A DNA stretch of 64,000 bases from Lepidodermella squamata (GCA_047495785.1 JBLDXI010000011.1:1302001-1366000), one strand, 5' to 3'. Shown: positions 29,911 to 57,890, numbered from the stretch's first letter. Notes: generated by a model from the letters alone, not told the origin. Program-made: numbers and translations.

Positions 29911-30807
29911 ATGAAGTCATCGGCAGTGAAGCACCTGAGCGCCATTGAAAACCTTCCGGACGAAGTTCTCCTGCAGATACTCAGTTACCTTGATGTCACC
30001 GATATTCACAGCTGTGCACTAGCATGCAAGCGTTTGTCTCGTCTCGCAAAATCTCGATTACTGCTCGAGCCGCTGCTTCGCAAGTGCTTCCAACCCGGCG
30101 TCTTCGACCGCTTTCTCGCCACTGGTTCGGAATCCTTCGGCCAGCTATTCCGCAGTTTAGAGGCTTACTCAATTTTCTCCGTCAATGGTTTGCTGCTTGA
30201 AGACACGGATGAGTTTCGCGTAATGACTGGCACGAGGTACTGCTCAGACCCTATCGCTATTGCAAGGTCCTTGAGATATTCAAGCGACGCTGATTGGCCT
30301 TCCCTTCCATTCCTGTTCCTACGAACATATGAAAAACAAGAAGACGCTTCATGTTGCCTGATTAATCTACCAGAGTTGCTTGACCCTATCTTTGAGGCAA
30401 ATCAGATCCTGCGAATTCCCTTTGTCATCGGCTCGGAGGGAAATCTCGATAAACATAATCCAGTTATCTGCTTCGATTCGGATTTTAATGAAATCCACAA
30501 TTTTTGGCCACACGAGATTATGTCAAGCGCCAAAACTTTCCAATCCTATCCTCCTGAACTGCATTATATATCGCTGAACAATGCCGCTGACGTGCCGATT
30601 CGCTTCATGCTGCCGCCTTTTTTCGATCAGTACTTGAAAGTAAGCCGAGAACACATCCCTGATACGGTCAGTTTTGACCTGGTTAACGGACGCAACGCTG
30701 CACTGTACGGTGACTTTTCGGATTTTCATGATAATTACGAAGCCGACCGCATCAATCGCACTGTGGACCCGGTACCTCATTGGAGGCCACCATACATCAG
30801 AAGATGA
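29911..30807 (+). CDS. F-box protein, most divergent array member (1)
   Basis: IENLPDEVLLQILSYLDVTDIHSCALACKRLSRL. The C-terminal blocks (CLINLPEL, ILRIPFVIG, CFDSDF, YPPELHYI, FMLP) align with the other members. Confidence 0.85.
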   Translation: MKSSAVKHLSAIENLPDEVLLQILSYLDVTDIHSCALACKRLSRLAKSRLLLEPLLRKCFQPGVFDRFLATGSESFGQLFRSLEAYSIFSVNGLLLEDTDEFRVMTGTRYCSDPIAIARSLRYSSDADWPSLPFLFLRTYEKQEDASCCLINLPELLDPIFEANQILRIPFVIGSEGNLDKHNPVICFDSDFNEIHNFWPHEIMSSAKTFQSYPPELHYISLNNAADVPIRFMLPPFFDQYLKVSREHIPDTVSFDLVNGRNAALYGDFSDFHDNYEADRINRTVDPVPHWRPPYIRR

Positions 30808-32100
30808 TTTTATATATTTTCGAAATCCTTTTTTTACGCTGAACGAGTTCGAATACGATTTTTATAAAATTGTCACGACTTTTATGTAACCAGCTTGAGC
30901 GAGCTTGAATTGTCTTCAAATTTGTGGAATGCTATTCTAAAAATGGTTGCAGCATGAGTCGAATCGTAACAGTTGCCGCTTCAATAAATTGCACTTTGTA
31001 TTTTGTTATAATTTTCTCTCAGTATTACGAGTTTTGTACTGTATGATATTGACTGAGCCGATTGTCTTCAAACCTTGTTGCGATTTGAATTTCGAGTAAA
31101 ATATTTACCCGGTTTTGTAATATTTCATGTGTTTATTTTTAGAGTGATTTTCATTATTTATTTATTTCATTTTTCAGCAGAATTCTCTGATTTTCTTTTG
31201 AAGAAACGATCGATTCGATATTTTTGCGATACTTTTCAGATTTCCGTACAATCTTTTTTTAACATCGCTATGTCTTGAAACTTTTCTGGGAGATTTAATA
31301 ATAATTTAGAACTAATTGACAGGTAATTTTAGAGCTAACCTGTTCAAATCCTGCGAATGTCTCTATTTTAAATTAGAAAATTGGAAAATGCCGAGTGGAA
31401 AGTTGACGAAAAGCCGAGTAATTGCGAGGGTTTTAAATTGAGATCTGAATTTTCGGGATGAAGTTTTCGGTTCAAGCGTGCTTATTAAGTGGAAAAAAGA
31501 TTGACTGCCTAAAGGGCCCATTAACTTGAAATTCCAGCAGTGGATTGATTTCCTTACTTTACTCCACATTTTGAATTTTGAAAAGTTCAAATTGAAATTT
31601 TTTATTTTTCGATCGCTTCGTACATTCGAATTTCTGGGCCTGAGAAGGATCTGTTTCAAGCGTAAAGACCTGAAGACCTTGGTTCTCAAGCTCTTTCTTA
31701 CTAGGAAATGCCCTGATTTTAGTGTTCCAGCTATCAATTTGATATGCTATAGCAGCTATATACTTTTCTAAATTTTGCCTATCTCTAAAATCTCAATTTT
31801 TGCCTGGAAAAATTAGAATTAATTAGAACTCATAATTATGCATATTTTATGCTAGCATCGGTGAGTAAAGGACTCGAACTTGAACTTACTGAGCCGATAT
31901 CGATGCCAAATATCGATTTTGCCGATCAGTGAATTTTCAATATCTGAAGTCCTGAAAGCAGCAAAAATTAAAAAAAAAATTAAAAAATTTAAATTTTCCA
32001 AATTTGTACGAATTCGCTGAAATTTTCTTTTTTTTCGACAGTTTCACAAAATTTTTGCTACCTATGCTTCGTTTAGGCTTTATTTAATTGCCTTTATCTA

Positions 32101-32904
32101 ATGGATCGCCTATGCTTGCCATCTCCCAGAATTTCTGTCTCGGATTCGATATCGATCGATGACCTGCCGGATGAGATGCTAATGGCAATTTTCGAGTATT
32201 TACCATTGCCAGAATGGCCGACATGTATGGTGGTTTGCCAAAGATGGCACCGAGTGTTAAATGACGATCTGATGCTGATCAACTTTCTGCAATGCGAATT
32301 TTCCATCAATGCCGTTCCTTGGTTTCTGAAAAGCAGCCGTAAATTGCTGGAAAATTTGAGCACAGCTCTAAAATCAAGCCCATTATTCACCAGAAAAGGG
32401 TTGAGAATCAGTTCTGAAATGTCCCAATTTCCGAAGTTGGATTTAAAGCCAAAAAATATCGGAACTCTTCATGTTTTCGTTCAATCTTTGCGATTTTCCG
32501 ATTCAAAATCATGGAAAAATGAGCCAATTTCGAGTTTTCAAAGCGGCGCCGAACATTTTTTGGTTTTAAATTTGAAAACTTTGATCGAATTATCGGAAAT
32601 TCCGGATTTGATGCAATTATTCGTGCTAATGGTCACAACTGATCGAGGATTTAAAGCCTCGCAGGCCTTGGATGAAACTATTCTTCTCGACGAAGACCTG
32701 GTCCGAGTTGGCCGTCTGAAAAATGTTGGCTCGGCTCTGGTTCTGGAAAATTATTGCCCTGAATTTCATTATTTAGGCATTTTAGGCGATGGTCCTTTCA
32801 CTTTTCAAGCTCTGCTGCCGAGTCAGTTTCGAGAATTCGAAATGAAATTATTGGAAAAGGAGCTTTCCTACCTGGAATTGTTTGATTTTCTGTCCATTAT
32901 ATAA
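32101..32904 (+). CDS. F-box protein, divergent array member (2)
   Basis: SIDDLPDEMLMAIFEYLPLPEWPTCMVVCQRWHRVL; FLVLNLKTLI, LLDEDL, CPEFHYL, LLPSQF blocks. Confidence 0.85.
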   Translation: MDRLCLPSPRISVSDSISIDDLPDEMLMAIFEYLPLPEWPTCMVVCQRWHRVLNDDLMLINFLQCEFSINAVPWFLKSSRKLLENLSTALKSSPLFTRKGLRISSEMSQFPKLDLKPKNIGTLHVFVQSLRFSDSKSWKNEPISSFQSGAEHFLVLNLKTLIELSEIPDLMQLFVLMVTTDRGFKASQALDETILLDEDLVRVGRLKNVGSALVLENYCPEFHYLGILGDGPFTFQALLPSQFREFEMKLLEKELSYLELFDFLSII

Positions 32905-33556
32905 ATTAATATATATATTAAAAAAATGCAAAGATAAACATGTAATTTCAATATTTTTTTGATTTTTCTAAAGCATTTTTTATACCTTGTTGTTTCGATC
33001 GATCCAATATTTTTACCTGTGATCCGTCCGACTTATTTGTGCTCAAAATTTTACTATTTTTGTTAGCGATTTCTTGTTGATAACCTTTTTGTGATAATAA
33101 ACTCGAACGCGAATTTGTTGAAAATGGGCCATATTCATACAATTTTCTGAAAATTTAAATTTAGAAATTTAAAATGACATAAAATGGAAAAAGGAAGTTG
33201 AAGCTTTCAAATATTTAAATCGTTTTCATAGTCGATTTTCGAATATTTTTTGTGTGATGAATTTCAGGGTGTAAATATTTCCAAAATTTCTGAATTTTTT
33301 TCTCGATTATCGGTTTCGGTTTTTTCCTCCTTGATCGATAATGATGCGCCTTACCACCCTGGAATTTTAGGTTTTTGTTGCATGATGCCCTGGGGCATGC
33401 AAAAATTGTCATATTTTGGGAAAATCACTGATTTGTAGAATCGCTACTTAAAATCGATATTGATTCTGTAAGCTGCATCAATTTTGAATATTTTGGGAAA
33501 TTAATGAAAAATTGTTTCGAATTAAATAATTATCTAGGTTTTTAAAGAATCCTTTT

Positions 33557-34206
33557 ATGAAACGATGTTCGCCGGAATCATCGGCAAATTACGCGATCGT
33601 CCGTTGCATCGATTTCGATCAACGATCTGCCGATAGAAATTCTCTTCGACATTTTCCTAAAATTTCTAAAATTTTCCGATTGGAAAAATTGCGTTCTGGT
33701 ATGCCGGAAATGGAACAATATAATCGATTCTGATGAAATGCTCGCAGCTCGTTGGAAACAGGAATTTAGCCTGAATCGCGAGAAACCAATCGATTTTCCC
33801 CGTGATACAAACGTCTTTACAAATTGGCGAAAAATTCAAAAAATTAACGGCAGCTTTTTCTCGAAAAAAAGGAGAAAAAACCCGTGGAAAATTATATGGC
33901 GTGTTTAGACTCGAATTTCGCGCCTGTTCCGACGAAAGCCAAATTTTGTGACGTCGCGTTTGTCATGCCTGAATTGCCTCGAGATGCTCGCTACATCATA
34001 TTCTACTGCAAGGCTGATGATTGCAGGCGGAATAGTGTTTTGCTGCCCTGGCCGATTTGAAAGCGATTTTTTCTGCTGATCGAGAGGAGGAGCGGTGATG
34101 ACGAACAGGAGGAATTGAATAATTATTACCACCTCGGCTATGATAGCGATTCGGAGGGCGACAATCGGTTGCGCTATGATGATGACGATTACGCGATTGA
34201 CATATG
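33557..34206 (+). pseudogene. F-box array pseudogene (3): frameshift and internal deletion
   Basis: ATG AAA CGA start is out of frame with the SINDLPIEILFDIF block. The sequence jumps from FFSK to the CLDSNF block near 33870. An acidic tail remnant remains. Confidence 0.85.
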
Positions 34207-34974
34207 AGGCATTTTTTGCTCTGTAAATTTCAATTTTGAAAACGCTAAAGGAAATACCCCGTTTTGTCGATCTTGAAAAATGTGATATTAACATTTTTAT
34301 TTTCAAAAATACATTTGTAACTATTTTTCGATCCTATTTTCTCGGAAAATGGCACCTTAATTTGCTTGATTTTTTTTTAGATTTCTTAATTTTAAAATTT
34401 TAGAAAATTTTGCTGTCGCTCATCCGAGGCCGAAACCTGTTTCTATCAAAGATTCGCCAGCCGAAATTAAGAGTATTATTTTAATTTTCTGATGCTTGAA
34501 AAATAAGACGGGATTTTTGTACAATTTACATATTCCCTCAGAAAATTCGCCTTTTTCTCGGAACCGTATTTTCTTAATCAGATCGGTCTATATCTCTTTA
34601 GAAGATGTATATTTCAGCTCGACAATCAAAAATTGGTTCAATTTTCGCGATTTCAGACCGATCTAAATAATCCGGCTTTGAGAATCTGGATTTTTAACCT
34701 GTACAATTTCAATTGGAAACATAAACTAGGAACATTTTAAATCATGAATAATTTAACAGTCATATTAACTAGAAGCGACTTATATTTCGGGTCTTTTTAG
34801 ATCCATTTTGCCTTTATACAACGGTTTTTATAAACTGGATTTTTTATAGTTTAATTAGCAGAGGGATTGAACGGCTCTCATCAAATCTATCTTGATAAGG
34901 AATTTAAATTGGCAAAATTTGGTGTGGCATCGATGGCCAAGACAAAATTTGATATTTTTTAGGAGTTTGTAAAA

Positions 34975-35727
34975 ATGAGGCGACGTTCACGCAAATCGGC
35001 CAAATGTAAGAAAACTGCCGTTGAAACTGCTGTTGGTGGAATTTCAATCAACGATCTGCCGAAAGAAATTCTTTTCGAAATTTTCCTAAAATTCCTGAAA
35101 TTTTCTGATTGGAAAAATTGCGTGCTGGTTTGCCGAAAATGGAAGAATTTAATCGACTCGGATGCGATGATCGCAGCTCGTTGGAAGCAAGAATTTAGTC
35201 GCCATCTCAATAAACCATTGGACTCTCCCCACGATTTGAAAGTCTTTACAAATTGGCGAAAAATTCAAAAGAAACGCAGCAGTTTTTTCTCAAAGGATGG
35301 CCTAGTTATAGAGGAATTACACCCGTCCCTAAAACCCATCTATGTGTGGTACGAAGCCGTTAGCGATGAAGATTTTCTACTCTACAACAAATTGTCAAAA
35401 TTTGAAAAAGCCGCGAAATCATTGGCTAGACATCGGAAAAAAATCGTTAATCGAATAAGCTTTTTAGAAACGGACGTGGGCACATTCTGGCTGGTCGACC
35501 TTGAGAAAGTAATCCCCGGTTTCTCATCATTGGCGAATTTGGTGAAAATTCTGAAATTTCCCCTCGTTATCGGACGATTCAGCTACAAAAATGAGAGGAA
35601 ACCCGTTGAAAAATTGCTGGCTTGCCTGGACTCGAATTTCAAATCAATTCCTTTTGAGGCGATTTTTCATGAAATTGCAATTTTCATGTCTGAATTACCC
35701 GAAAATTGCCGTTATATTATGGTATAA
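34975..35727 (+). CDS. F-box array member (4), C-terminally truncated (lacks WLPWPSQ and tail); possible pseudogene
   Basis: Close paralog of 40193..41122, but homology stops at CRYIMV* and the missing part was not found downstream. Confidence 0.75.
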   Translation: MRRRSRKSAKCKKTAVETAVGGISINDLPKEILFEIFLKFLKFSDWKNCVLVCRKWKNLIDSDAMIAARWKQEFSRHLNKPLDSPHDLKVFTNWRKIQKKRSSFFSKDGLVIEELHPSLKPIYVWYEAVSDEDFLLYNKLSKFEKAAKSLARHRKKIVNRISFLETDVGTFWLVDLEKVIPGFSSLANLVKILKFPLVIGRFSYKNERKPVEKLLACLDSNFKSIPFEAIFHEIAIFMSELPENCRYIMV

Positions 35728-37147
35728 TATATCTAACCATTTTTTCCTCCTAATGTCATGACTTATTTCGAATTTATTAATTGAATTTTTTAAACCTGAG
35801 CAACCTTAATGAAAAGAGAGCAAGAATCGCGACAAATTCCACAGGTCCACCACCTCGGGATAAATTGAAAATTGAGGTTCATTTATTTCAATTTTTAATT
35901 TTTCGTACATATTATTTCTGTATAACAAAATCACATTTCGTTCCTATTTTTAATTTAATTCCAGCTGAAAACGTAAAGGAAATTCCAGCGGACTAATTTT
36001 TTGGTTTTTCAAAACAAAAAACGGGATTCCGAAATCTTAGCCAATTTTTCCGCGTGAAATAGGTAGTTATTAGCGAAGGGCCCTAACAACCCTAACAACG
36101 AAATTTGGAAAAACTCCAAAATTGACCTAAACCTAACCGTGAACCCTATAACCAAGCCCTAGCCTTAAACCTGAATCTTTATTTCAACCCCTAACCCCAA
36201 CTCTTAATTTTGCTGAAAAACACAATTTTATGAAAAAAATATGTATGAAAGAACGCTTCGTAAGAATTATCTCCCAAAGTTGGCGATTTTTGCCCTCATC
36301 AATGAACCTTACGACCCTGTGATTTTTGCTTTATAGTTAACTGGAACCTGGAACCCTTTAAGATACCTTTTAATCGCTTGGCGAGGGTTGCAAGACTTAC
36401 TTTTGCCTGAGATAGAATAGAACAGGAATTCGATGGATTGCCCGCGTGTGTGTTAAATTTAGTTCGAACAGCAATCCTTCGTCTAGAGTCTAGAAGCCTG
36501 CAAGTCTACAAGTCTGAACACGAATCTACTCTGTTTAGTATTAATAGGCCGGATCGGCGCTGGCTAGTATTGACGTCACTGCATAGTGTTAGGCAGAACA
36601 ATAGCCACATACGATACCGGCGCTAAAACCTTCATGCCTTTCTCGTGTAATAACGTGCCGTCATGCTTGGACGGTTTGTGTGAATCAAGTGTTTAAGTAG
36701 ATTTTCCGCCTAATATTGTAAATTTTGCTTTCAGGAATGCTGATAGTAGGTATAGGTAGAAATAACTAATTTTCCTATAAAAGCTATACTTGAAATTGAT
36801 ATCGGATATGAAGGAAACTGTTTACTAAAATCGCCTAATTCGCTTTTTAAATCTTTCGGCTAGATAAAATTAGATTAAAGGACACCCAGAAACTCGAACA
36901 ACTTTATTTCTAGAAACTTGATGACTTGGATCGGAACACAGAATTTACGGCTAGCATTTGAGTAATCCTCGGAAGGTCGATATTAAAAATTACCATCAAG
37001 TTGAGCATAATAACCTGGATTAGGTTCGTTCAATTCATTGATTTTAAATTATTTTGGAAAATTATTTGATAATTCTGTGAATATTATCGTCTTGTCCCCA
37101 ATGCCGCATTGACAATTTTTAGAATTTTACTGTAAAAATTCCCTGCT

Positions 37148-37996
37148 ATGGATCGATGCCAGCCAGGCTTGGTGGCGGCATCATTATCCGTTGCTTCAAT
37201 TTCAATCAACGATCTGCCGACGGACATTCTTTTCGATATTTTCCTGAAATTCCTGAAATTTTCAGATTGGAAAAATTGCGTTCTGGTTTGCCGGAAATGG
37301 AACAATATAATCGATTCGGATGCGATGATCGCAGCTCGTTGGAAACAGGAATTTAGTCGTTATCTCAAAATGCGATTCGTTTCTCCCCAGGAGAATCCCC
37401 AAGAGAAATCAGTTGATACAACGTATTTTACAAATTGGCGGAAAATTCAAAAATTCAACGGCAGCTTTTTCTCGAAAAATGGCCTAATTCTAGACCATTT
37501 GGACCCTAACGAGATCGACTTCTCGGGCAATGACGTGATTACAATTGACGCCGCCATAAAATTACTGGGTCAAAATCGCGAAAAGGTCATCCATCCAATC
37601 AGTCTTTTGAGATTCCACACGAACGATTATTGGCTGATCGACCTTGAGAAAGTAATCCCCGGCTTTTCGCTAGCAGATCTGTTAAAAAACCTGGAATTTC
37701 CCCTCGTCTGCAGATATTGCAATTGTAATTATACAATGAGAAAGCCTGTTACAGATTTTCTGGTGTGTTTAGACTCGAATTTCGTGCTCGTTCTCATGTC
37801 CACTTTTTGTGACGGCAGCACTTTTGCCATGCTTGACTTGGATCGAGATTCTCGCTACTTGTTAATACATGATAGCACGTTTTCTAGTTTATGGCTGCCC
37901 TGGCTGAGCCAGTTGGACGAATTTAAAAAGTTTAATAATCTATTAATATGGCCGCGGCATTACAGACACTTATTTTCGAAGCCGTCTTTGCCGTAA
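37148..37996 (+). CDS. F-box array member (5)
   Basis: SINDLPTDILFDIFLKFLKFSDWKNCVLVCRKWN plus the full family C-terminal domain. Confidence 0.9.
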   Translation: MDRCQPGLVAASLSVASISINDLPTDILFDIFLKFLKFSDWKNCVLVCRKWNNIIDSDAMIAARWKQEFSRYLKMRFVSPQENPQEKSVDTTYFTNWRKIQKFNGSFFSKNGLILDHLDPNEIDFSGNDVITIDAAIKLLGQNREKVIHPISLLRFHTNDYWLIDLEKVIPGFSLADLLKNLEFPLVCRYCNCNYTMRKPVTDFLVCLDSNFVLVLMSTFCDGSTFAMLDLDRDSRYLLIHDSTFSSLWLPWLSQLDEFKKFNNLLIWPRHYRHLFSKPSLP

Positions 37997-38095
37997 AATC
38001 GACGTCGAACAAGAGCTGTTAGGGTCAAATCACACGTCTGGGGGCAAAAATATGCCGATACAGCCGACTTTAATATCGGCTCTAGTACATTTCTA

Positions 38096-38537
38096 CAGTG
38101 AAAATCAAAAGTTCCGCACGGTCAGGAATTTGTTGAGTTGAAGCTAAAAATATCTCACACGCGCCCGAACTATTTTTAGCTCCAAGCTTGGGTTAAACTC
38201 AGCTTAAAATAAAAAGTGTAACTCGGACAGACCAAGAAGTTTTAATGGTTATAAAAATATGAATATTCATAATGTGCTAATTAATATTCCGAAGCCCTCA
38301 AAGTGCTCAAATTTTTCTGAAATGTTTGGCACTAACAATGTCCTAGTTTCATGCCATCTCATGAGTATATTAATTTTTTTAAAACTATCCCCTTTCCTTG
38401 GATCTATTTTTGGAGCTCGTGCAAAAGGCGTAATTTTGGTCCGTTTTGCAGGAGATAAACAGCCTCAACTCGCACGTGCGAAAAACTTCAACTAGCGTCG
38501 CCTCAATTCCACAGTGCGGATCTTTTGATTGCCACTG
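38096..38537. mobile_element. Tc1/mariner-type MITE (442 bp)
   Basis: TA flanks at 38094-95 and 38538-39; imperfect TIR CAGTGAAAATCAAAAGTTCCGCAC / GTGCGGATCTTTTGATTGCCACTG. Confidence 0.85.
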
Positions 38538-40192
38538 TATATGTCGTACCGTAAAAGGCGATTTCTCCCAATTGCCAATTGAGGTATCTCAATGAGCAAT
38601 CCGAATCGTTCCCAACGTCATTTTCAGTTATTTTAAGAAGTTTTAAGAATATGGAAACCAAACAACGTTGCAGAATCGCCCTTCGCCTATCCAGCAGATA
38701 CCATTTTCCCTAATAACTTGTATGGTATCTGCGTGTTTTATGAGTTTTTAAAAAGTTGGCGGATTTTCGCTGTAACTGTTATTGGGCCTCCTCGGCCCAT
38801 CTAAACTCTTTAGTAGTCTGTTAGCAGACCAATCGATAGGGCTCTGTGATATGTGCTAGGTTTTTATTCAATAACCTGAAGACTGATGAAAACAAAAGAC
38901 GAAAAGCAATTTTCAGATTGCTCATTGAGATACCTCAATCGGCAATTGGGAGGATTGCCTTTAACGATACGACATATACTTATGCAGGATAAAGACGACT
39001 TTTCACATGTGACTTCTACGTCACATGACTATTCACGAATAAAGTCAGCTTTATGTTCGAAAATCACGTTGTGGATGAAACTAGCTCTAAGTCTATCGTA
39101 TAAACTAGCTGAGATCAGAGAGAATTTTTTTATTCGCAACAAAAAATGGCCGAAAATGAGTGAAAAGTGGGGTTTTGCGAAAATGTAGACATCGCGAAAT
39201 TTTGATGCCGCTTTGAAGGTCAATAAACGAGCAGTCGATCGTCGATAAAAAATAGGTTGATATTCATCAGGGTTACAGAGAAAATGGGCTTCAAAGTTTG
39301 GGAGTGGCAATTCCTAATTTCGAACAATGCGCACTTGAAATATTTGAGTTTTTATTACCAGCATTAGAATTCCCTCACGCGAAAAATTCTGATGTCATTT
39401 TTTTCATGCGCTGTCGACATTTCTTAGGGTAATCTGAGGTGAGGAATCTTGCTATATATTCAAACATTTTGTTAGGATCAAGCTAGTGTGTCTAGGACAA
39501 CCCGAATCAATGACACTTTCCTGGACATCTCTGGAATTTTCCGTATTTTAAGGCGGATCTCAAATTTGAAAATTTAAAATCCTTAAAATTTAAGAGAAAA
39601 ACTGAGCAGAGACATCCAAGAATCGTTCCTCTTCAAGTCAACGCACGTTTTGCCATTTGCTGGAAAATACAGAAAATACGCCAAAGAGAGACAAAGTCAC
39701 GCCCGAAAAATTTTAGAAAAATTCGAAAAGTCACAATAATAGTAATCGAGTATGTGACTTGTTGATGGGATTAAAAAAGGATTTAAAAACCCGGAAAACC
39801 CCGATGGTAACTGGTTCGGTAATATTCGTATTTTTTCCGGTTAGACCAAATGAGGTTCCAGCGCTAAAATTAAGCGACGTGGCACCAATATTCCGATTCT
39901 TCAAGAGTTCGGCTCATTCGCCTATTAATTGATACTGATGCCCTCCCTGAGCCTAGGATTTCAATTTCAGCTACATGATGACCTAAGGTATGTAGAAAAT
40001 TGGCCGTCTTGCCTGTTGGTTTTGCCGGAAATAGTACTTATTTCTTGAAGGATATTTTCAGAATTTGAATTTTGTTATAAAGAAAATCTCGGAACGTTAT
40101 TTCATCGTAGATTTTAGAACGTGCAATTTTTTTTTAATTATTCGAAAAGGAATTTCAATATTTTTGTAGGTTATTAAAAAATAACTCGCATC

Positions 40193-41307: not shown

Positions 41308-42255
41308 ATGAAGCGAGCAACACCGAATTTTAGGGATGAACCGCGAAAATTTGCAGTCGCTTATCGAAGGCCGAGACGTTCTCCAATCAACGATTTACCA
41401 CCCGAAATTTTGAGCGAAATATTTTTGAAACTGAAAAAATTGAGCCACTGGCTATCTTGCATGTTGGTCTGCCGAAAATGGTACCAAGTTATCGATTCCG
41501 ACCAAATGATAGCAGCTCGATGGCACAAAGAATTTCCGAATTTTTTGAACGCGAAAAATTTTGGCGATTGGAGACATTTTCAAAAATCGAATCCCGACTA
41601 TTTCCAAACTTGTGGCCTAACTTTGGACAGATCGAAATTTCACGAAATTTCATTTTCAAACCCAGGTTTCCCAGCTAACGTGCATCCATACGAATTTCCT
41701 CCTCATGCAAATGTGAAAAATCTTCAGAGGCGAATTAAAAACGGTGAAAATCGATCGATTATCGATTTAAATTCGATCAATCACATAAAAATGTATGGCA
41801 ATTATTATTGGCTGATCGATTTCGAAAAAGTTGCGCCGAATTTTTCTCTCGCGAATTTGCTATCGAATTTGAAATTTCCGTTAGCAATCGGCCTCTTCGA
41901 TTATGAAACATCGCCGGGCGATCTTCGAAGGTTCTTTTCATTTTTGAACTCGAATTTTGAAGAATTACAGTTTGAAATGGAATTTTTTGAAACGGCCTGG
42001 ATTTTGCATGATTTTCCGGCTACTTGCCGTTATGTGATGTTCTACGAAAATATGTTGCATTCCACTCATATCTGGCTTGCTTGGCCCAGTCAGCTGGATG
42101 ATTTACGAGAGATGTTCCTTTGTGTAAGGGACGAGCTGCAAAGAATGGCAGACGAAGAGGACAAAATTCTAGAAGAGGAAGAACGCAGTGAAGATGAAGA
42201 ATTGCTTCGACCTTTCTACGATGAGGAATTGGATGAAAACGTCAAGAAGATATGA
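41308..42255 (+). CDS. F-box array member (7), moderately divergent
   Basis: INDLPPEILSEIFLKLKKLSHWLSCMLVCRKWY; YWLIDFE, FSLANLL, WLAWPSQL; acidic tail. Confidence 0.9.
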   Translation: MKRATPNFRDEPRKFAVAYRRPRRSPINDLPPEILSEIFLKLKKLSHWLSCMLVCRKWYQVIDSDQMIAARWHKEFPNFLNAKNFGDWRHFQKSNPDYFQTCGLTLDRSKFHEISFSNPGFPANVHPYEFPPHANVKNLQRRIKNGENRSIIDLNSINHIKMYGNYYWLIDFEKVAPNFSLANLLSNLKFPLAIGLFDYETSPGDLRRFFSFLNSNFEELQFEMEFFETAWILHDFPATCRYVMFYENMLHSTHIWLAWPSQLDDLREMFLCVRDELQRMADEEDKILEEEERSEDEELLRPFYDEELDENVKKI

Positions 42256-42691: not shown

Positions 42692-43606
42692 ATGAAGCGG
42701 AACCTGTCGCAATCTAGCGATTCTCCTGCGAAATTAGCTAAACCCGCCGATGAAAATGTGCCTATTCCGACCAAAGACCTACCAGCCGAAATTTTGTTCG
42801 ACATTTTTTTGAAATTTCTGGACCTTTCCGATTGGAAGAATTGCGTCAGGGTCTGCCGGAAATGGAACAATTTAATCGACTCGGATGCGATGATCGCAGC
42901 TCGTTGGAAACAGGAATTCTGCCTTAATCGAAAGAAACCAGTCGAATTACCGCAAGATTCGACAGTTTTCTCGCAGTGGCGAAAAATTCAAAAAATTAGC
43001 AAAACATTTTTCGATAAATCTGGCCTTGAGCTGGACAAATATAGCTTTCTACCAAAGAATAAAATGGTCGAATTGTCGCTTTTCGGCTTCGCATCTCGGC
43101 AACAAATAAAAAATGTCGCAAGATCGCTTTGGCGAAACCGCGAAAAAATCGTCGGTCCAATCAGCCATTTGGAACTCCACGCGGAACATTTTTGGTTAAT
43201 CGACCTTGAGAACGTAATTCCCGGCTTTTCACTTGCGAATTTGGTGAAAAATCTGAAATTTCCGCTCGTTATCGGATGCTACGATTGCCGCATTGAGGAA
43301 GAACCTATGAATAGTTTCCTGGCCTGCTTGGACTCGGATTTCGATCGGGTACCTGCGAAGGCGTTATTCCGCGACGTTGCTTTTGTCATTCCCGAATTGT
43401 CTGAAAATTGCCGTTATATCCTGTTTTCTTCCGATACATGGGAGGCTGCTTACTTGTGGCTGCCCTGGCCGAGCCAGATGCCCGATTTGATGTCACGTTT
43501 CGAGGATGAGCGCGACGAACAGAAGGAACTTGAAGGTTCGGATAAAAGTGACGTGGATTCGGAATCTTATGACGATTTTTACGATGAATATTTGACGGTT
43601 TTATAA
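42692..43606 (+). CDS. F-box array member (8)
   Basis: MKR start at 42692 by comparison with paralogs; intact; ends YDEYLTVL. Confidence 0.92.
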   Translation: MKRNLSQSSDSPAKLAKPADENVPIPTKDLPAEILFDIFLKFLDLSDWKNCVRVCRKWNNLIDSDAMIAARWKQEFCLNRKKPVELPQDSTVFSQWRKIQKISKTFFDKSGLELDKYSFLPKNKMVELSLFGFASRQQIKNVARSLWRNREKIVGPISHLELHAEHFWLIDLENVIPGFSLANLVKNLKFPLVIGCYDCRIEEEPMNSFLACLDSDFDRVPAKALFRDVAFVIPELSENCRYILFSSDTWEAAYLWLPWPSQMPDLMSRFEDERDEQKELEGSDKSDVDSESYDDFYDEYLTVL

Positions 43607-44446: not shown

Positions 44447-45367
44447 ATGAAGCGGAGCCTGGCTGAATCGAGCGAATCTTTGGCGAAGTTAGCTAAAACC
44501 GCCGATGAAAATCCCCCCATTTCGACCAAGGAACTGCCAGCCGAAATTTTGTTCGACATTTTTTTGAAATTTCTGGACCTTTCCGATTGGAAAATTTGCG
44601 TCAGGGTCTGCCGGAAATGGAACAAATTAATCGACTCGGATGAAATGATCGCAGCTCGTTGGAAACAGGAATTCTGCCTTAATCGAAAGAAACCAGTCGA
44701 TTTACCGCAAGATTTAGCTCTTTTCTCGCAGTGGCGACAGATTCAAAAAATCAGCAACACGTTTTTCAGCGATGTTGGCCTTGATTTGGACGAAAGTAAC
44801 TTTCTGCCGAATAAATTGATCAAACTACCGGGTGTTTCCGAGAAATTTCACCAACAAATGATAAATGTCGCAAAATCACTTGCCAAAAAACGCAAAATAA
44901 TTGTCGATCCAATCAGCTATATCGAATTTGACTTGGAAAATTATTGGTTAATCGACCTTGAGACCGTAATTCCCGGCTTTTCTCTTGCGAATTTAGTGAA
45001 AAATCTAAAATTTCCTCTCGTTATCGGACGTTACAATTACCACACTGAGGAAGCCCATGTCAGCGATTACCTGGCGTGTTTGGACTCGAATTTCAAGCGG
45101 GTATCCGCGAAGGCGTTTTTTCGCGACATTGCGTTTGTCATGCCTGAATTTTCTGAAAATTGCCGCTATATCTTGATTTGTTCCGATGCGGGGGAGACTG
45201 GTGCTGGTTGTTTGTGGCTGCCCTGGCCGAGCCAGATGGCCGATTTGATGTCAAGTTTCGCCGATGAGCGCGACGAACAGGAGGAGCTTGAAAGTTCGGA
45301 GGACGAGAGTGAAACGGACCCGAAATCTTACGACGATTATTACCAGGAATATTTGACGGTTTTGTAA
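44447..45367 (+). CDS. F-box array member (9)
   Basis: Intact 306 aa; close paralog of member 8; ends YQEYLTVL. Confidence 0.92.
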   Translation: MKRSLAESSESLAKLAKTADENPPISTKELPAEILFDIFLKFLDLSDWKICVRVCRKWNKLIDSDEMIAARWKQEFCLNRKKPVDLPQDLALFSQWRQIQKISNTFFSDVGLDLDESNFLPNKLIKLPGVSEKFHQQMINVAKSLAKKRKIIVDPISYIEFDLENYWLIDLETVIPGFSLANLVKNLKFPLVIGRYNYHTEEAHVSDYLACLDSNFKRVSAKAFFRDIAFVMPEFSENCRYILICSDAGETGAGCLWLPWPSQMADLMSSFADERDEQEELESSEDESETDPKSYDDYYQEYLTVL

Positions 45368-48140: not shown

Positions 48141-48185
48141 ATCATAGCCTTGACCAATTATTTTGATCTTTTGTATTTTGCATTG

Positions 48186-48628
48186 GGTGTGGCAACTGCG
48201 CACCCTGAATTTAGGGTTCCAGCACTAATTTTGAGGCTCCAGCACTAGATTTCCCCTAAATATGGTTTTTCGCGTTTTTAGTCTTTACTAGAATCTCCAT
48301 TTTTTATGCCTAACCGATAGATCTTCATATAACGCGTATTTCGCGCCATAAGCGGTCAGTTTACTAATTATTATAATTCATCCTTTAGAGCCAATATCGA
48401 TTCCAATTATCGATTTTACAAATCAGTGATTTTTCCGATATCAGTCATCGTAGAACCCAACGTCGATAATTTTTCTACGTACCGTTGGGCGCCAGGTAGC
48501 TAGAATATAAAATCTTAGGTTCAGGGAGCGCATCAGTATTTATCAAAAAACGAAAACACCGAAATCGCAAAGAATATGAAAAATTTAGTGCTGGAACCTT
48601 ATTTTTAGGGGTGCAAATATTTGGACAG
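48186..48628 (-). mobile_element. Longest copy of dispersed repeat family A
   Basis: Inverted homolog of 8161-8492. The core is also at ~2671, 18751, 19131, 19901, 23928, 25181, 25712, 31893 and 33418. Confidence 0.7.
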
Positions 48629-48873: not shown

Positions 48874-50244
48874 ATGAAGAGAAGCCTTTCACAATCGAGC
48901 GAATCTTCCGTAAAATTACAAAAATTCGCCGATGAAAATGCGTATTCGATTTCAATCAACGATCTGCCAGCCGAAATTTTTCTGAAATTTCTGGAGCTTT
49001 CCGATTGGAAAAATTGCGTCATGGTGTGTCGTAAATGGAACAATATACCGTATTTTACGAATTATAAGACCCTGCCCTGTATTTTTTTCAAACGAGGTTC
49101 AAGTCCTGCCCTGTATTTAGAGTCTGCCCTTTAATTCGGCTCTGCCCTATGATTTTTTCGAACCTAATCAGTCACCTGAAGTGTACCTAGATCAGCAGTT
49201 AAAACCGCCGAATAACCACTATAGCTACTGCCTTCCACCTGTGACTACACTACAAGTGTGTGCTCAAATGGATTTGGGTGGATAAAGGACGATTAGTGCA
49301 CTTACTGACGAGAAATCGCAACCTATCCAACTTTAACCACTTATACCCAGCATGCGCCCATGTAAGCCACTTCATACAAGGCCCTGCCTATTATTAAGGT
49401 TCTGCCCTTTATTATTTCAAATGACCATTACCCTCTGCCCTTTATTCCGGTTCTGCCCTATAATTGGGTCCTGCCTAATAATTCGTAAAATACGGTAATC
49501 GACTCTGATGCGATGATCGCAGCTCGTTGGAAACAAGAATTTAGCTTGCATCGAAAGAAACCAGTCGATTTCCCAAAAGATTCGACGGTTTTCTCACAAT
49601 GGCGAAAAATTCAAAAAATTGGCAGTTCCTTTTTCTCACGTTACGGCCTCGTCCTGGACCATCAATATGAATTTCTGCTGGATAAATTGATCAAATTGCC
49701 GCTTGATGGCGATAAATAGCCGCTAGCAATTGATGCTGTCGTTGAATCGCTGGAACAAAATCGCGAAAAAATCGTCGAACCAATCAGCTATTTAGAAATT
49801 GACTGGGCAGAATATTGGTTAATCGACCTTGAGAACGTAATGCCCGGTTTCTCTCTACCGAAATTGGTGAAGAATCTCAAATTCCCCCTTGTTATCGGAC
49901 GTTACAATTACCACACTGAGGAAGAACCGGTTGATAATTACCTGGCCTGTTTGGACTCGAATTTCAAGCCGGTACCCGCAAAAGCTCGTTTTCGAGAAAT
50001 TTCATTCGTCATGTCTGAATTGTCTGAAAATTGCCGATATATCTTGATGTATTACGATTTATCGCCCACCAGTTTGTGGCTGCCCTGGCCGAGCCAGATG
50101 GCCGATTTGTTGTCACGTTTCGAGGATGAGCGGCGAGATCAGGAGCGTGAAGATGGAGTTGAGAGTGGAATCGAAGACCCCGAGGCTTACTTTGGCGCCG
50201 AATGGTCTGATGACGGCAGTTATGACGGTGAATATCCGTTCTGA
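48874..50244 (+). pseudogene. F-box array pseudogene (11): MITE insertion, in-frame TAG at 49717-49719, 12-nt deletion in the F-box
   Basis: ORF pieces 48874, 49513 and 49840 rejoin into one family member once 49048-49497 is removed. Confidence 0.9.
49048..49495. mobile_element. pogo/Tc2-like MITE (448 bp) inserted in an F-box CDS
   Basis: TIR CCGTATTTTACGAATTAT / ATAATTCGTAAAATACGG; TA duplicated (49046-47, 49496-97). Paralogs show the empty site AACAATATAATCGA. CTGCCCT direct repeats lie near both ends. Confidence 0.93.
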
Positions 50245-50868
50245 TTTCTTCCGTCTTGTTTAAAAATAGAAATGACCGTGAGGAAAAAATTATTCCTATA
50301 TAAATTAAAAAATAATTCTGGGAACTGAAATGCAAATTTCAGAGCTTTTCCCTTATTGTGCATAATTTGAAAATTTTTACACATAATCTCGTTAATTTTC
50401 TACTAATTTTTATGTCGATATCAAGCTGTCCAGTGGCGAAATTTGAATAATATATGTATGTTAAATACTGATTATTATCTCCAGGTGATAATTTCTGAAA
50501 TCGTCGGATGAATCATCAATGACCAAGCCAAAAATTCTACCCCTTGATTTTTCGATACCATGTATCGTGTTTCGCGTCCAAAATTCACCTGGTTTTGATT
50601 TTCAGTGAATTAAAGTGTTGATTGTCTGAAATTAGGCCACGCGCCACGCTGTGATTTCTGACCAGGTTCGATTTCAACCATTAAAATTGAGGATTCATAA
50701 GACGGTTTTACTTCGAGCTCGTTTATTCCTTTGTTTCAATTTCAACAAAATTTCTATTCTTGTACAATTTTTCCAGCGAAAAATCGCTTAATAAATCAAT
50801 ATTTCGCTCTCTTTAAAAAATGTAAATTCGATTTTTAGGGTAATTTGCATGAAGCTTACTTTTCTTTA

Positions 50869-51738
50869 ATGAAGCGGAGCCTGGCTGAATCGAGCGACTC
50901 CTCGGCAAAAGTTGCAAAATCCGCCGATGAAAATGCATCTGCGATTTCAATCAACGATCTGCCAATCGAAATTCAATCCGAAATTTTCCTGAAACTGCGC
51001 AAACTTTCCGATTGGCAAAATTGCGTTATGGTTTGTCGAAAATGGAATAATGTAATCGACTCGGATGCGATGATCGCAGCTCGTTGGAAACAGGAATTCC
51101 TCCTTAATCGAAAGAACCCGGTTGATTTACCAAAAGATGTGACAGTTTTCTCGCAGTGGCGAAAAATTCAAAAGATTAGCGACAGTTTCTTTTCAACAAA
51201 TGGCCTAGTTTTGGACAAAGCCGGACCCCCACTGGATAAATTGATCAAATTGCCGCTCGATGGAGTTGAAAATCTGCGGAATATAGTAAACGTCGCAAAA
51301 TCGCTGGGTCGAAATCGCGAAAAAATTGTTGAGCCAATCAGTTATCTCCGACTGGACTCAGAGCGTTATTGCCTTGTTGACCTTGAAAATGTGATTCCCG
51401 GATTTTCTCTAGCGAATTTAGTGAAAAATCTCAAATTTCTCCTCGTTTTCGGCCGTTTCGACCTTAGTTATCAAAACGCGATTGAACCTATCGGTAAATG
51501 CCTGGCCTGTCTGGACTCGAATTTCACGCCAGTTCGCGCAAAAGCTACGAGTTCATACGACGTTGTTGTTGTCATGGATTTGCCTCTTGATTGCCGGTAT
51601 ATTTTGATTAATTCCGGGTCAGCAAAGACGAATTTGTGGCTGCCATGGCCGAGCCAGTTGACCGACTTGAAGTCGCGTCTCATCCAGGCTGATGATTACA
51701 ATCACGACAGTTATTATAATGCTTTTTATCAGCATTGA
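50869..51738 (+). CDS. F-box array member (12)
   Basis: MKR start at 50869; intact family domain; short Y/D tail. Confidence 0.9.
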   Translation: MKRSLAESSDSSAKVAKSADENASAISINDLPIEIQSEIFLKLRKLSDWQNCVMVCRKWNNVIDSDAMIAARWKQEFLLNRKNPVDLPKDVTVFSQWRKIQKISDSFFSTNGLVLDKAGPPLDKLIKLPLDGVENLRNIVNVAKSLGRNREKIVEPISYLRLDSERYCLVDLENVIPGFSLANLVKNLKFLLVFGRFDLSYQNAIEPIGKCLACLDSNFTPVRAKATSSYDVVVVMDLPLDCRYILINSGSAKTNLWLPWPSQLTDLKSRLIQADDYNHDSYYNAFYQH

Positions 51739-52047
51739 CCAGTTCCGATTGTGTTCGTCTTGATAGAATTTCGGAAAGTAAAATTTTCTATAATATTTCA
51801 TAAATTTCTGCCGGCTTTTTTTCATGGCTCTTAAATCTTCAAAAGGCGAAAGAAGAACTTCAGATTTGATTTTACAGATTGAATCGCGCTTTTGCATTCT
51901 GATTTGATTCATCCATGAAATGAAGTATAAAAACTCAGTAGAGTCACTGTAGTATAAAACAATTGCTTCATAGCAAATATAAAACTCACAACAAGTGCGA
52001 GGTTCCATTTTTAGAAACATTTGAAAGTAAAATTGATTTAATTAATA

Positions 52048-53019
52048 ATGAAGCGGAACCTGGATGAATCGAGTGAATCCTCGGCGAAGGTAGCAAAATC
52101 CGCCGATGAAAATGCATCTGCGATTTCAATCAACGATCTGCCAATCGAAATTCTATCCGAAATTTTCCTGAAACTAGCTAAACTTTCCGATTGGCAAAAC
52201 TGCGTTCTGGTCTGTCGGAAATGGAACAGCGTAATCGACTCGGATGCGACGGTCGCGGCTCGGTGGAAGCAAGAATTCGCCTTGATTCGAAAGAAATCGG
52301 TCGATTTACCAAAAGATTTGACAGTTTTCTCGCAGTGGCGAAAAATTCAAAAAACTAGCTCGAGTTTCTTTTCGAAAAATGGCCTAAATCTAGACAAAAT
52401 CGAAGCGGTGCCGATCAAGTTGTCGCTGAAGGGCAAACGGCAGATACAAGATACGTTAACGAATGTCGCGAAAGCTCTTAGCCAAAATCGCCGGAATATT
52501 GTTGATTCAGTCAGTTGTGTAACGTTTGAATTCAGTAACTATTGGTTGATTGATCTTGAAAAAGTTATTCCTTGCGTTTCGTTGGCGAATTTGTTGGCAA
52601 TTTTGCAATTTCCCATCGTGATCGGGCGTTACAGCTATCAACTCGAGGATGAACCCTTCGGTGACTATGTAGCTTGTTTGGACTCGAATTTCGCGTCGCT
52701 TCCCGCGAAAGCTAGATTCTGCGACGCTGCTTTTCTCATGCCGGAATTGCCCGAGCTTTGCCGTTATATTTTGATCGATTGCGAGTCTTATTATGATGAT
52801 AACAGTCACCCTAAGAATATGTGGCTGCCCTGGCCGAGCCAGTTGGCCGATTTGAAATCGCGTTTTTGTGACGAGCGTGAGGAAGAGCAGGAGCGTGACC
52901 GTGAAACTTGGAGGTTAGAGAATCGAGAGGCCGCCGATTATTTCGACGATGACGACGATGATGAGGATGACGATGGTTTTCCTTACTTCTCCGGATTTTG
53001 TTCGTCTTGTGATTGCTGA
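52048..53019 (+). CDS. F-box array member (13)
   Basis: Intact 323 aa; poly-D tail ending GFCSSCDC. Confidence 0.92.
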   Translation: MKRNLDESSESSAKVAKSADENASAISINDLPIEILSEIFLKLAKLSDWQNCVLVCRKWNSVIDSDATVAARWKQEFALIRKKSVDLPKDLTVFSQWRKIQKTSSSFFSKNGLNLDKIEAVPIKLSLKGKRQIQDTLTNVAKALSQNRRNIVDSVSCVTFEFSNYWLIDLEKVIPCVSLANLLAILQFPIVIGRYSYQLEDEPFGDYVACLDSNFASLPAKARFCDAAFLMPELPELCRYILIDCESYYDDNSHPKNMWLPWPSQLADLKSRFCDEREEEQERDRETWRLENREAADYFDDDDDDEDDDGFPYFSGFCSSCDC

Positions 53020-53822
53020 GATGGAGAGACTTGAAAAAAAGAAAATTAGTGTTGAAATGATGTTTGAAAAATCTACCTTAAATTGGGGTGACTTGGGCAT
53101 ATCGAAAATCGAAGGTGGTAATAAGGTAAAGATCGCATGAGGGAGGTACCGTTAGATAGTCTGAAAGATGAAATCTCCTAAGATGGCGTATGGTTTCAAT
53201 TTAGATGAGACGGATTCGGTTGACCAGCCACGGAAGTTTTACCGAAATTTAACAATTTCGAAAAGTTTAAAGTTTACCATAACTTGACCTATAATTTCAT
53301 TTCCCGAAATAGGTTGTATTGTACACTGGCCTTTTCTTGGGCTATCCAATGGTACCCCACTCATGGGGCCTCTACCTTGTCACCCCCTTCACCCCATAAT
53401 TTACGGTACCTGTTTAGTTTTGTTGTTAATTTTCCAACTAATATTTTTTACTTGTTACGTTTTTCAAAAATGATGGGCTGATCAGTGGTCTGCTTAGTCA
53501 TGATGTAAAAATTTCACGATTCAGAAATATGAGTAAAATGAAAAGATACATGTCTCAAATCATTCATTAATCATTAATTGCCTTTCTATTTTGATCGACA
53601 TTAATCACGGTATTCAATTTTTGATTCAGTGAATCTTACACATTCGTTCAAACAATCGTTCGCTATCATCTTTTTTTAATTTTCGAGCTAGCTTGAACGA
53701 CAAATGAACCTAAAAGTGACAGGCTATACTGCGAACTAACTTTGATTTATTAATTCATATTTTACGGTCTCTGATGAAGATATTTTGAATATTATATCGA
53801 TTTATTTCGATACATTGAGGCT

Positions 53823-54665
53823 ATGAAGCGACACATTTCCCAATCTGGCGAAGCAACGGCTAAATTGATTAAAACGTCCGATAATACTACGATTTCTATC
53901 AACAATCTACCCGTCGAAGTTTTGTTCGATATTATTCTGAAATATTTGAAAATTTCTCATTGGAAATCCTGCGCTCTGGTCTGCCGGAAATGGAATGCTA
54001 TAATCGACTGTGATGAGATGATCGCAGCTCGTTGGAAACAGGAATTTCGCTCTAATCAAACGAAACCGAAAGAGTTACCGAAAGATTTCACTGTTTTATT
54101 CTCGGAGTGGCGAAAAATTCAAAAAATTAGCGGCAGTTTCTTCTCGAAGAGTGGCCTAGTTTTGAACAAAGAAGAAGCGCGGAACAAATGTATTAAATTG
54201 TCAGTTGATGCCGATTATCTTTGTCCTAAAATTGCGGAGGTTGTTGAAGCGTTGGGTCGAAATCGCGAACAAATTGTCAACCCTATCAGCTATCTAAAGG
54301 CAGATTTGATATCTCATTGGCTGATCGACCTTGAGAACGTAATTCCTGGCTTTTCACTTGCGAATTTGGTGAAAAGTCTGAAGTTTACTCTCGTTATCGG
54401 CCGTTTCAAGTTTATAACATGGCGCTGTGATCGTGTTAGACATCGCATGGCTTGTTTGGACTCGAATTTTCAGCCAGTTCCCGCTAAAACTATTTTGTGC
54501 GGCGTGGCGTTTGCCCTGGCAGAATTGCCTGAAAACTGCCAATATATTTTAATCGGGGGCGATTCATCACAGGCTCATCTGTGGCTACTTTGGCCTAGTC
54601 AGTTTGCGGCTTTGAAATCGCGCTTTTCTAAAGAGCTTCGACAAATATACCAATCAGGGGCGTAG
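53823..54665 (+). CDS. F-box array member (14)
   Basis: Intact 280 aa; close paralog of member 10. Confidence 0.92.
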   Translation: MKRHISQSGEATAKLIKTSDNTTISINNLPVEVLFDIILKYLKISHWKSCALVCRKWNAIIDCDEMIAARWKQEFRSNQTKPKELPKDFTVLFSEWRKIQKISGSFFSKSGLVLNKEEARNKCIKLSVDADYLCPKIAEVVEALGRNREQIVNPISYLKADLISHWLIDLENVIPGFSLANLVKSLKFTLVIGRFKFITWRCDRVRHRMACLDSNFQPVPAKTILCGVAFALAELPENCQYILIGGDSSQAHLWLLWPSQFAALKSRFSKELRQIYQSGA

Positions 54666-54832
54666 AATCTGCATGATTGTCAAGATACAGACGAATTTCG
54701 GTTTTGATCTCTCTCGTTCACGTAGCAACTGGTGGGAAGGAGAAACTTGCTACAAAAATGGCTATCGAAACAAAAATGTCTTTAAGAACTTGAATTTAAA
54801 TTTTGATTTTTAGGGTGTTGATCATTTTCACA

Positions 54833-55665
54833 ATGAAGCGAAACTTTTCCTACACTAGCAAATCGCCGGCAAAATTTGCAAAAACCGCCGTTGAAAAAGC
54901 TTCGATTTCGATCAAAGATCCGCCAATCGAAATTCCATCCGAAATTTTCCTGAAACTGCGGAGACTTTCTTATTGGAAAAATTGCGCTCTGGTTTGCCGG
55001 AAATGGAACGCTTTAATCGACTCGGATGCGATGAATGCGGCTCTTTGGAATAAAGAGTTTCGCCTCGACCGAAAGAAACCGGTCGATTTACCAAAAGATT
55101 CGACTGCTTACTCGCAGTGGCGAAAAATACAAAAAATCGGCGGCAGTTTTTTCTCGAAAAATGGTCTTATTCTGGATGAAGATGACTTTCTGCCCAATAA
55201 ATTGATAAAACTGTCGCATGATGGCGAGGAAGATCCTCGAAAAATAACTGATTTTGTCAAATCTCTGGGGCGAAATCGCGAAAATATCGTCGATCCAATC
55301 AGCTATCTAGAATTTGATTTGCAACGATTTTGGTTAATCGACTTCGAAAACGTAATTCCTGGCTTTTCGTTGGCGAATGTGTTGAAAAATCTCAACTTTC
55401 CACTTGTTATCGGACGCTACAGACACCACTATGAAGAAGAACCTGTCAGTGATTACTGGGCATGTTTGGACTCGAATTTCGCGCCAGTACCTGCAAGAGG
55501 TTGCTATCTCGACGTTGCCTTTTACATTGAATTGCCTGAAAATTGCCGCTATGTGTTGGTGTGTTGCGAGCCAGCAAAGACGAATTTGTGGCTGCCATAG
55601 CCGAGCCAGTAGGCCAATTGAAGTTGCGTCTCATCACGGGTTACATCAGCATTATTTATTACTTT
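54833..55665 (+). pseudogene. F-box array member (15) with premature stops in the WLPWPSQL motif
   Basis: TGG CTG CCA TAG CCG AGC CAG TAG versus paralog TGG CTG CCC TGG CCG AGC CAG TTG; F-box also eroded (IKDPPIEIPSEI). Confidence 0.75.
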
Positions 55666-55956
55666 CCGACTTCGAAAATGAGGTTTTTCCGTATTGACCC
55701 TTGGCGGATAGTTGGTGGATTGTACATTGTGTTCGTCTCGCTCAATGAGGGATTTGGCTGCTATAAAATTGTCGTATTTTCAATGAAAATGACTCGATCT
55801 TTCTGAATTTCAGAATTACTTTAACTTGAATTTAACTATGTAAGCAAATTTGTAATTGCAATTTTTCTACATGGACATTTCCTTCTTTCAAATAAAATCC
55901 CTTATTTTGCTATTTTTTGATGATTTTATTTTAGGGTATTCGTGAAATAAAGTTTT

Positions 55957-56913
55957 ATGAAGCGAAACCTATTCCAATCGAGCGAATCGCCGGCGAAATT
56001 CGCCAAACCCATCGATGAAAATGTGTCGATTTCGATCAACGATCTGCCAATCGAGATTCTATCCGACATTTTCCTGAAACTGCCGAAACTTTCACATTGG
56101 AAAAGTTGCGCCCTAGTCTGCCGGAAATGGAACACTTTAATCGACTCGGATGCGATGATCGCAGCTCGCTGGAAACAAGAATTCAGCTTGAATCAAAAGA
56201 AACCGGTCGAGTTGCCTCATAATTTGAGCATTTTTTCCGAGTTGCGGAGAATCCAGAAAACCAGAGAGAGTTTCTTCTCGAAAAGTGGCCTAGTTCTGGA
56301 CGAAGAAAAAATGGTCCCAAAACTGACCAAGCTCTCGCTTCGTGGCGAGCATGATGAATTTGACATTGAAAACTTGGTGAAATCACTAGATCAAAATCGC
56401 AAACAAATTGTTGATCCTATCAGCTATCTACAACTGGATTCGGAGCGTTATTGGCTTGTTGATCTTCAGGCCATAATTTCTGGCTTTTCGTTGGCGAGTT
56501 TGGTGAAAAATCTGAAATTTTCTCTTGTTATCGGTTATTACAGTTACAAAATTGAGGGAGAACCTGAGGAAAAATACCTAGCTTGTTTGGACTCGAATTT
56601 CAAATCAGTCCCATTTGATGCCAGTTTTTGTGACTCTGCTTTTGTCATGTCTGAATTGCCTGAAAATTGCCGCTACATTGTGATCTATTGCAATTCTGAA
56701 TGTTACGACCAGACGCACGTGTGGCTGCCCTGGCCGAGCCAGTTGGCTGTTATGAAGTCGCGTTTGTACAGAGAGCGGCAGGAAGAGGAGCGTGAAGACG
56801 AACAGGAGCGTCTGGAAGATTACGCTGATCATTACTACGATGGCGATGATTACGACGGTTATGACGATGGTTATGATACATTCGGATTTTGCTCGTCTTG
56901 CTGCGACTGCTGA
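55957..56913 (+). CDS. F-box array member (16)
   Basis: Intact 318 aa; D/Y/G-rich tail ending GFCSSCCDC. Confidence 0.92.
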   Translation: MKRNLFQSSESPAKFAKPIDENVSISINDLPIEILSDIFLKLPKLSHWKSCALVCRKWNTLIDSDAMIAARWKQEFSLNQKKPVELPHNLSIFSELRRIQKTRESFFSKSGLVLDEEKMVPKLTKLSLRGEHDEFDIENLVKSLDQNRKQIVDPISYLQLDSERYWLVDLQAIISGFSLASLVKNLKFSLVIGYYSYKIEGEPEEKYLACLDSNFKSVPFDASFCDSAFVMSELPENCRYIVIYCNSECYDQTHVWLPWPSQLAVMKSRLYRERQEEEREDEQERLEDYADHYYDGDDYDGYDDGYDTFGFCSSCCDC

Positions 56914-57409
56914 AAAAATGGAAGTCGAACGATCTTGGCAACGATCTTCGAAAGTTTTGTTTGACGGTTCCTGTTCCTTGTTAATCAAGCTAATAGTGTA
57001 CAGTTTGTTTTTTTTTACCTAAAAAGCGCTATTTTCTCGTTCTGAAGAGTCAAAACCAGTCAGCTTACACACATTTCTAAGTTGTATTACCATGTCATGA
57101 TCCTATAAACTTTGCGAATAAAATGACACCAGATGTATCCTGGTGAAATTAATTTTTTATTTTGTTCGGTTGTGGAAATAAAACGGGATCAGTGACTTTG
57201 ATAAGCCGAAATAAGCCGGGTTACTTAGGCATAGCAAATCTTGAAGGAGGCTTGGCAAACAGCCCATGGGTGGGGTATGGGGTAGCCTGTACAAACGGTT
57301 ACCTGAGAATGAATAAGTTTTCCCATCTGGATCACACTGCATCATACTGTTCAACATGACACGCGCAACGTAATTTTCCTGGAATTGATTGTCTATCATT
57401 AGCTAGCAG

Positions 57410-57890
57410 ATTTTTCGCTGGTGAATATTCGGTGATTTCTATCAATGATTTCCCGATTTCGACTGAGGCTTCTGAAATCTGAAATAATACTTATTGATTA
57501 AAGCTGGCTTTAAAGTATTATTGGCTTATGGATCTCCAGAGCGTAAATCTGGGTTTTTTCACGCGCGAATTCGGTAAAAATTCTGAATTTTACCTTTTGC
57601 AGCTTTAACCGTAGGTAATGGCTTGATGGCGTGTTTGGACTCGAACGCGTCGAACTCGAAGCCAATCCTTACATTTGTGACGCGGGTGGAGTGGCGCCAG
57701 TCATGATAAATTGCCTAAAAGTCTGTTGCAAGTCTCTGTGCGCGCATGCTAAAAGTGGGATCGCGTTTTTCTGAAGAGCAAGCGGAGGAGTGGGATACGC
57801 CATTGAAAGACGAGAGCGCGGGGGTTTCTGCGATGATGATTATGACCAAGACTATACGATGGTGATGATTTTAATTACAACTGCGATTTT
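57410..57890 (+). pseudogene. Highly decayed F-box array relic (17)
   Basis: Fragments in correct order: ATTTCTATCAATGATTTCCCGATT (ISINDFPI), TATTGGCTTATGGATCTC (YWLMDL), GCGTGTTTGGACTCGAA (ACLDSN), acidic tail remnant. Confidence 0.75.

Follow-up and report, generated by a model that had tools for sequence, protein, structure and literature searches.

A tandem F-box gene array in Lepidodermella squamata with a loop-variable, probably FBA-derived substrate domain

Organization of the array

The window analyzed here is a 64,000-nt stretch of DNA from the gastrotrich Lepidodermella squamata. ORF lists, tblastn, hmmsearch and nhmmer place 17 F-box copies in it, all on the plus strand, from 29911 to ~57870. 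Twelve copies (A, B, E, F, G, H, I, J, L, M, N and P) are intact single-ORF genes of 267–323 aa, one (D) is truncated, and four (C, K, O and Q) are broken. The tblastn, hmmsearch and nhmmer searches thus return exactly the count of the initial annotation (17 same-strand copies; 12 intact, one truncated and four pseudogenes or relics). Its description of the coding sequences as intronless is also borne out: the 12 intact copies are single ORFs, and the acceptor-like motif described below lies 5′ of the ATG.

29911–30807, plus: copy A, intact, 298 aa; divergent outlier with the motif nearest to that of FBXO44
32101–32904, plus: copy B, intact, 267 aa; divergent outlier
33557–34160, plus: copy C, pseudogene; ~87 codons lost internally near 33867, plus a frameshift
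34975–35727, plus: copy D, 250 aa, truncated after the RYI strand and so without a final strand or tail; its sister is F
37148–37996, plus: copy E, intact, 282 aa
40193–41122, plus: copy F, intact, 309 aa; acidic tail
41308–42255, plus: copy G, intact, 315 aa; long branch
42692–43606, plus: copy H, intact, 304 aa; sister of I
44447–45367, plus: copy I, intact, 306 aa
46257–47108, plus: copy J, intact, 283 aa; most basic N-terminus; sister of N
48874–50244, plus: copy K, pseudogene, interrupted by the element listed next and by an in-frame stop near 49717
49048–49495, no strand assigned: 448-bp MITE-like element in copy K with a TA target-site duplication and 18-nt terminal inverted repeats, all visible in the sequence itself
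50869–51738, plus: copy L, intact, 289 aa
52048–53019, plus: copy M, intact, 323 aa; acidic tail with a Cys-rich motif at its end
53823–54665, plus: copy N, intact, 280 aa
54833–55600, plus: copy O, probable pseudogene; a stop within LWLPW and a damaged F-box (two leucines changed to prolines)
55957–56913, plus: copy P, intact, 318 aa; the copy chosen for modelling
57429–57870, plus: copy Q, decayed relic (nhmmer E 3e-18 for 57499–57720)

The ends of the element in copy K resemble those of Tc2/pogo-type elements. Copies M and P are not sisters in the tree, yet one Cys-rich motif closes the acidic tail of both, a hint of gene conversion or of an ancestral tail that is gone from the other copies.

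Spacers between some intact genes measure 167–185 bp, so operon-like transcription is possible. A splice-acceptor-like motif of the TTTAG type stands 15–45 nt upstream of the ATG in 12 of 16 copies, against 5% of spacer windows (e.g., at ~55930, ~44420 and ~50840), and the surrounding spacers are otherwise diverged. No conserved splice donor partnering this motif was found; it may mark a 5′UTR intron or a trans-splice site. Its conservation and the purifying selection described below are indirect signs of function. No ankyrin exons were found downstream of the copies, where spacers go down to 167 bp and neither of two spacer ORFs matches a Pfam domain. The spacers also contain small dispersed repeats (38537–38979 and 48182–48493): an inverted pair separated by ~300 bp, and a 310-bp element that is 81% identical to 8189–8495.

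Within the window, the array is flanked by an unrelated ORF on one side and a class C GPCR gene on the other. The flanking genes are those of an animal, as the homeobox, GPCR and galactosyltransferase genes show. The following features lie outside the array.

3194–4015, minus: galactosyltransferase (PF01762)
6410–7177, minus: ORF with DUF3504 (E 3e-9), a domain linked to Crypton-type tyrosine-recombinase elements
16338–17069, plus: divergent Dlx-like homeobox gene
~20300–26400, minus: spliced cyclic-nucleotide-gated channel gene, recognized by eye
58069–60535, minus: class C (GABA-B-like) GPCR gene with an ANF_receptor domain, broken near 59578, probably by an intron
62091–64000, plus: near-identical GPCR gene in divergent orientation, with an ANF_receptor domain and a weak 7tm_3 match; it reads through at the position of the break

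Relationships among the copies and searches for homologs

Twelve copies form a close group with 38–58% identity to copy P, and copies A and B are outliers at ~20% identity that can still be aligned along the whole domain. The motif blocks that the initial annotation described as shared are present in the 12 close copies. The copies are not assembly duplicates, because the closest pair shares just 85% DNA identity. The same DNA also stands in a public run (X1), and on both grounds an assembly artefact was rejected, although X1 is possibly what the assembly was built from. This run, whose type is unrecorded and which includes spacer DNA, contains the array down to the letters of the deletion junction in copy C. 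Some of its contigs are 92–93% identical to parts of M (52241–52581) and P (56026–56318) and equal to no copy in the window, where the nearest paralogs at those stretches reach 70–78%. In the M-like variant the listed differences alter at least eight residues within aa 103–138. These variants are divergent alleles or further paralogs.

Every one of the seven copies scanned matches the Pfam F-box-like domain PF12937 at 38–48 bits (cut-off 24.3), and in the same seven copies no other Pfam domain scores above cut-off. The F-box sits near the N-terminus, as in F-box proteins that act as SCF adaptors, and is predicted to bind Skp1 and assemble with Cul1; its dN/dS of about 0.25 marks purifying selection and is an indirect sign of this. 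An MKR-type, NLS-like N-terminus had also been proposed. A strong basic cluster occurs in J and D only, and MKR is missing from A, B and E; nuclear action is therefore not established.

Searches with domain and full-length profiles found no homologs in a 5.8-billion-sequence set; none were found among 1.84 billion representatives, or in viral and metagenome contigs. ESM Atlas matches to DUF8381 and nematode F-box clusters (0.79–0.82) and to generic F-box proteins (0.86), with TM ≤0.41, fall within the chance range. Sub-threshold Pfam rows such as GEP5 and zf-WIZ were disregarded.

Fold and ancestry of the substrate domain

Modelling of copy P indicates an F-box (aa 26–64), a two-helix linker (65–103), a jelly-roll β-sandwich that best matches FBA domains (104–260), and a helix with an acidic tail (260–318). 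F-box, helical linker and substrate domain follow one another in a single collinear chain, as in the FBA family: model residues 23–260 align with FBG3 residues 2–253 from the F-box through the last strand, with FBG3 domain boundaries as published (PMC4603797). When the F-box is removed, structure comparison still ranks the FBA domain of FBXO2/6/44 first. Sequence searches point to the same family. The full profile against the PDB returns FBXO44 and FBXO6 at the top, with a gap-free F-box and a second aligned stretch inside the FBA domain. An F-box-free profile of residues 205–262, a segment picked after the full-profile result was seen, places FBXO44 first of 177,635 sequences at E 0.054; like all FBA sequence scores obtained here, this falls short of the formal threshold. 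Pfam FBA (PF04300) matches no member at E up to 5–10. The motif FQSYPPELHYI in copy A can be set against FSNYPPGVRYI in FBXO44, and the near-invariant Arg of the CRY motif occupies the position of FBG3 Arg221, a residue that helps orient the FBA domain (PMC4603797).

Since four partly independent lines converge on one small family, we conclude that the domain very probably descends from FBA. The initial annotation had recognized no FBA signature and proposed a different recognition fold; the first statement was wrong and the second is unsupported, given that FBA leads the F-box-free rankings by both structure and sequence.

An unrelated or new β-rich fold, or one derived in part from the RecA2 domain of a DEAD-box helicase, is very unlikely. 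The F-box-free rankings oppose it, as do the collinearity of the match and a pattern of loop conservation that suits FBA topology (see below). A match to the SUB2 helicase (E 0.03) was dropped: it arose with a single profile, disappeared with others, and demands helices where both models show strands.

FBXO44 (FBG3; PDB 3wso) is the top match by both sequence and structure, and the resemblance extends to the order of F-box, linker helices and 10-stranded-type β-sandwich, the xYPPxxRYI-type motif and the Arg221 equivalent. Identity, however, is only ~10–18%, and the array proteins gain a helix in the β2–β3 region, a C-terminal helix and an acidic tail. They are also encoded by 17 tandem copies.

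Absence of the canonical sugar pocket

The FBA domain is known chiefly from vertebrates, as a lectin for N-glycans, and FBXO2, FBXO6 and FBXO27 bind exposed N-glycans. Fbs1 (FBXO2) contacts chitobiose through Phe177 in the β3–β4 loop and Tyr279/Trp280 in the β9–β10 loop; FBXO44 retains these residues yet does not bind sugar (PMC4603797, PMC6389600). The array has no conserved aromatic at the β3–β4 tip. The LWLPW block can be placed in two registers. In the HMMER register it sits on FBXO44 YWAGW, with L, V, M or I at the Tyr279 position, and the Trp280 equivalent would remain. In both models it instead forms the last strand, which VIA aligns to the end of the Fbs1/FBG3 chains, and the YW loop is deleted, a loss of ~8–14 residues relative to the FBXO44 C-terminus. 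Copies A and B lack Trp at LWLPW, which favors the second register. In either register the models and alignments point to the same outcome: neither Phe177 nor the Tyr279–Trp280 pair of the Fbs lectins is conserved, and the canonical pocket is absent. This, together with its hypervariable substrate-side loops, separates the array from Fbs1/FBXO2 and Fbs2/FBXO6. FBXO44 also differs in keeping the residues that are replaced or deleted here, although a working N-glycan pocket is expected in neither.

By analogy with the Fbs proteins, the remodelled loops might still bind non-standard glycans, for instance on damaged lysosomes or engulfed microbes. FBA ancestry, a weak likeness of the modelled fold to F-type lectins and the Trp280 equivalent kept in the HMMER register are compatible with such an activity; the aliphatic Tyr279 position, the bare β3–β4 tip, the last-strand placement of LWL in both models and the missing Trp in A and B argue against it. 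We regard continued lectin function as unlikely.

Selection on the substrate-facing loops

We computed dN/dS for partitions taken mechanically from the model strands, using columns agreed by four alignments; the most variable loop columns were excluded as unalignable. The F-box plus linker gives 0.24, the proximal turns 0.27 and the distal loops 0.99 (about 0.8–1.2). Distal and proximal values differ (p 2e-24), and the distal value does not differ from 1 (p 0.92). Conservation flips from turn to turn along the sandwich, the pattern to be expected of connections that point alternately towards Skp1 and towards the substrate. The Skp1-side turns are conserved, while the five loops on the substrate side have become shorter or been rebuilt; the variable connections correspond to those forming the binding end of Fbs1/FBG3 (PMC4603797). 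Constraint in the distal loops is certainly relaxed. Positive selection on the substrate domain is unproven and borderline at best: in site models fitted with in-house GY94 code, M8 is preferred over M7 (p 5e-4; M8 class ω 1.33), but the stricter comparisons fail (M8a versus M8, p 0.057; M1a versus M2a, p 0.2). Pooled dS is ~1 and that of the closest pairs 0.3–0.4, from which we take the array to be old, with losses continuing.

Distal loops evolving at a rate close to neutral might simply drift, in proteins that have no specific target and serve as decoys for Skp1 or titrate dosage, or that bind through their acidic tails, which range widely among copies from 1 to 23 D/E. Such a role seems highly improbable. 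Purifying selection on the sandwich core of 12 copies (ω ~0.27) exceeds what a decoy would need, and loop lengths are held to narrow ranges.

The same measurements bear on the proposal that the array is a surveillance system, in which the proteins would recognize viral, parasite or transposon proteins and send them for degradation, by analogy with the Caenorhabditis FTH/FBA2 families. The concentration of variation in the substrate-side loops, the M7/M8 result, the five of 17 copies that are dead or truncated, and the variants of M and P in the public run that match no window copy all accord with an arms race. There are precedents for such F-box clusters (PMC8665587, PMC4063957), and FBXO44 silences repeats (PMC7921849). 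Against this stand the failed stricter tests, a distal ω of 0.99 rather than above 1, and the age of the duplications, the closest copies having diverged to 85% DNA identity. We consider surveillance a doubtful reading. The Caenorhabditis F-box–FTH and F-box–FBA2 clusters resemble the array as lineage-specific tandem birth-and-death clusters in which the F-box is conserved and the substrate end varies (PMC8665587). The array, however, is far smaller and has a different substrate domain, with no Pfam match to FTH or FBA_2 in its copies, and positive selection is not established in it. The initial suggestion of a lineage-specific expansion accordingly stands as regards a birth-and-death F-box array with a variable substrate-facing surface and no homologs detectable by sequence, but not as regards a separate fold.

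Proposed function and implications

We lean, with modest confidence, towards the view that the array encodes SCF adaptors of FBXO2/6/44-type origin that dock Skp1 and use their distal loops to take varied, mainly host, protein substrates. The ancestral gene would have been of the FBXO2/6/44 type, with an F-box and an FBA domain, and would have expanded by ancient local duplication followed by birth-and-death turnover. The F-box of each copy would dock the Skp1 of an SCF (Skp1–Cul1) complex, and the distal loops would capture different non-glycan (protein) substrates in a copy-specific manner. Captured proteins would be presented for ubiquitination, as with the sugar-blind FBXO44, and would most likely be, for the most part, intracellular proteins of the animal itself or damaged ones. 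Computation shows the domain architecture and how selection is distributed over it; Skp1 binding and substrate capture are what we infer.

As it stands, the array is one more lineage-specific F-box cluster with what is very probably a known fold: a pocket-less, loop-variable and ankyrin-free FBA-type F-box family, very probably not a new fold and not a demonstrated immune system. It indicates that an FBA domain can lose its pocket and amplify into a loop-variable family, here in a little-studied phylum. It is tempting to speculate, although we would not bet on it, that the lectin scaffold has become an antibody-like repertoire, with a fixed Skp1-docking frame and five hypervariable loops, that ubiquitinates foreign intracellular proteins. 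If so, it would represent SCF-based immunity arising independently of nematodes and plants. The loop map offers an experimental handle for deciding if large F-box expansions serve as immune repertoires or are drifting by-products of tandem duplication.
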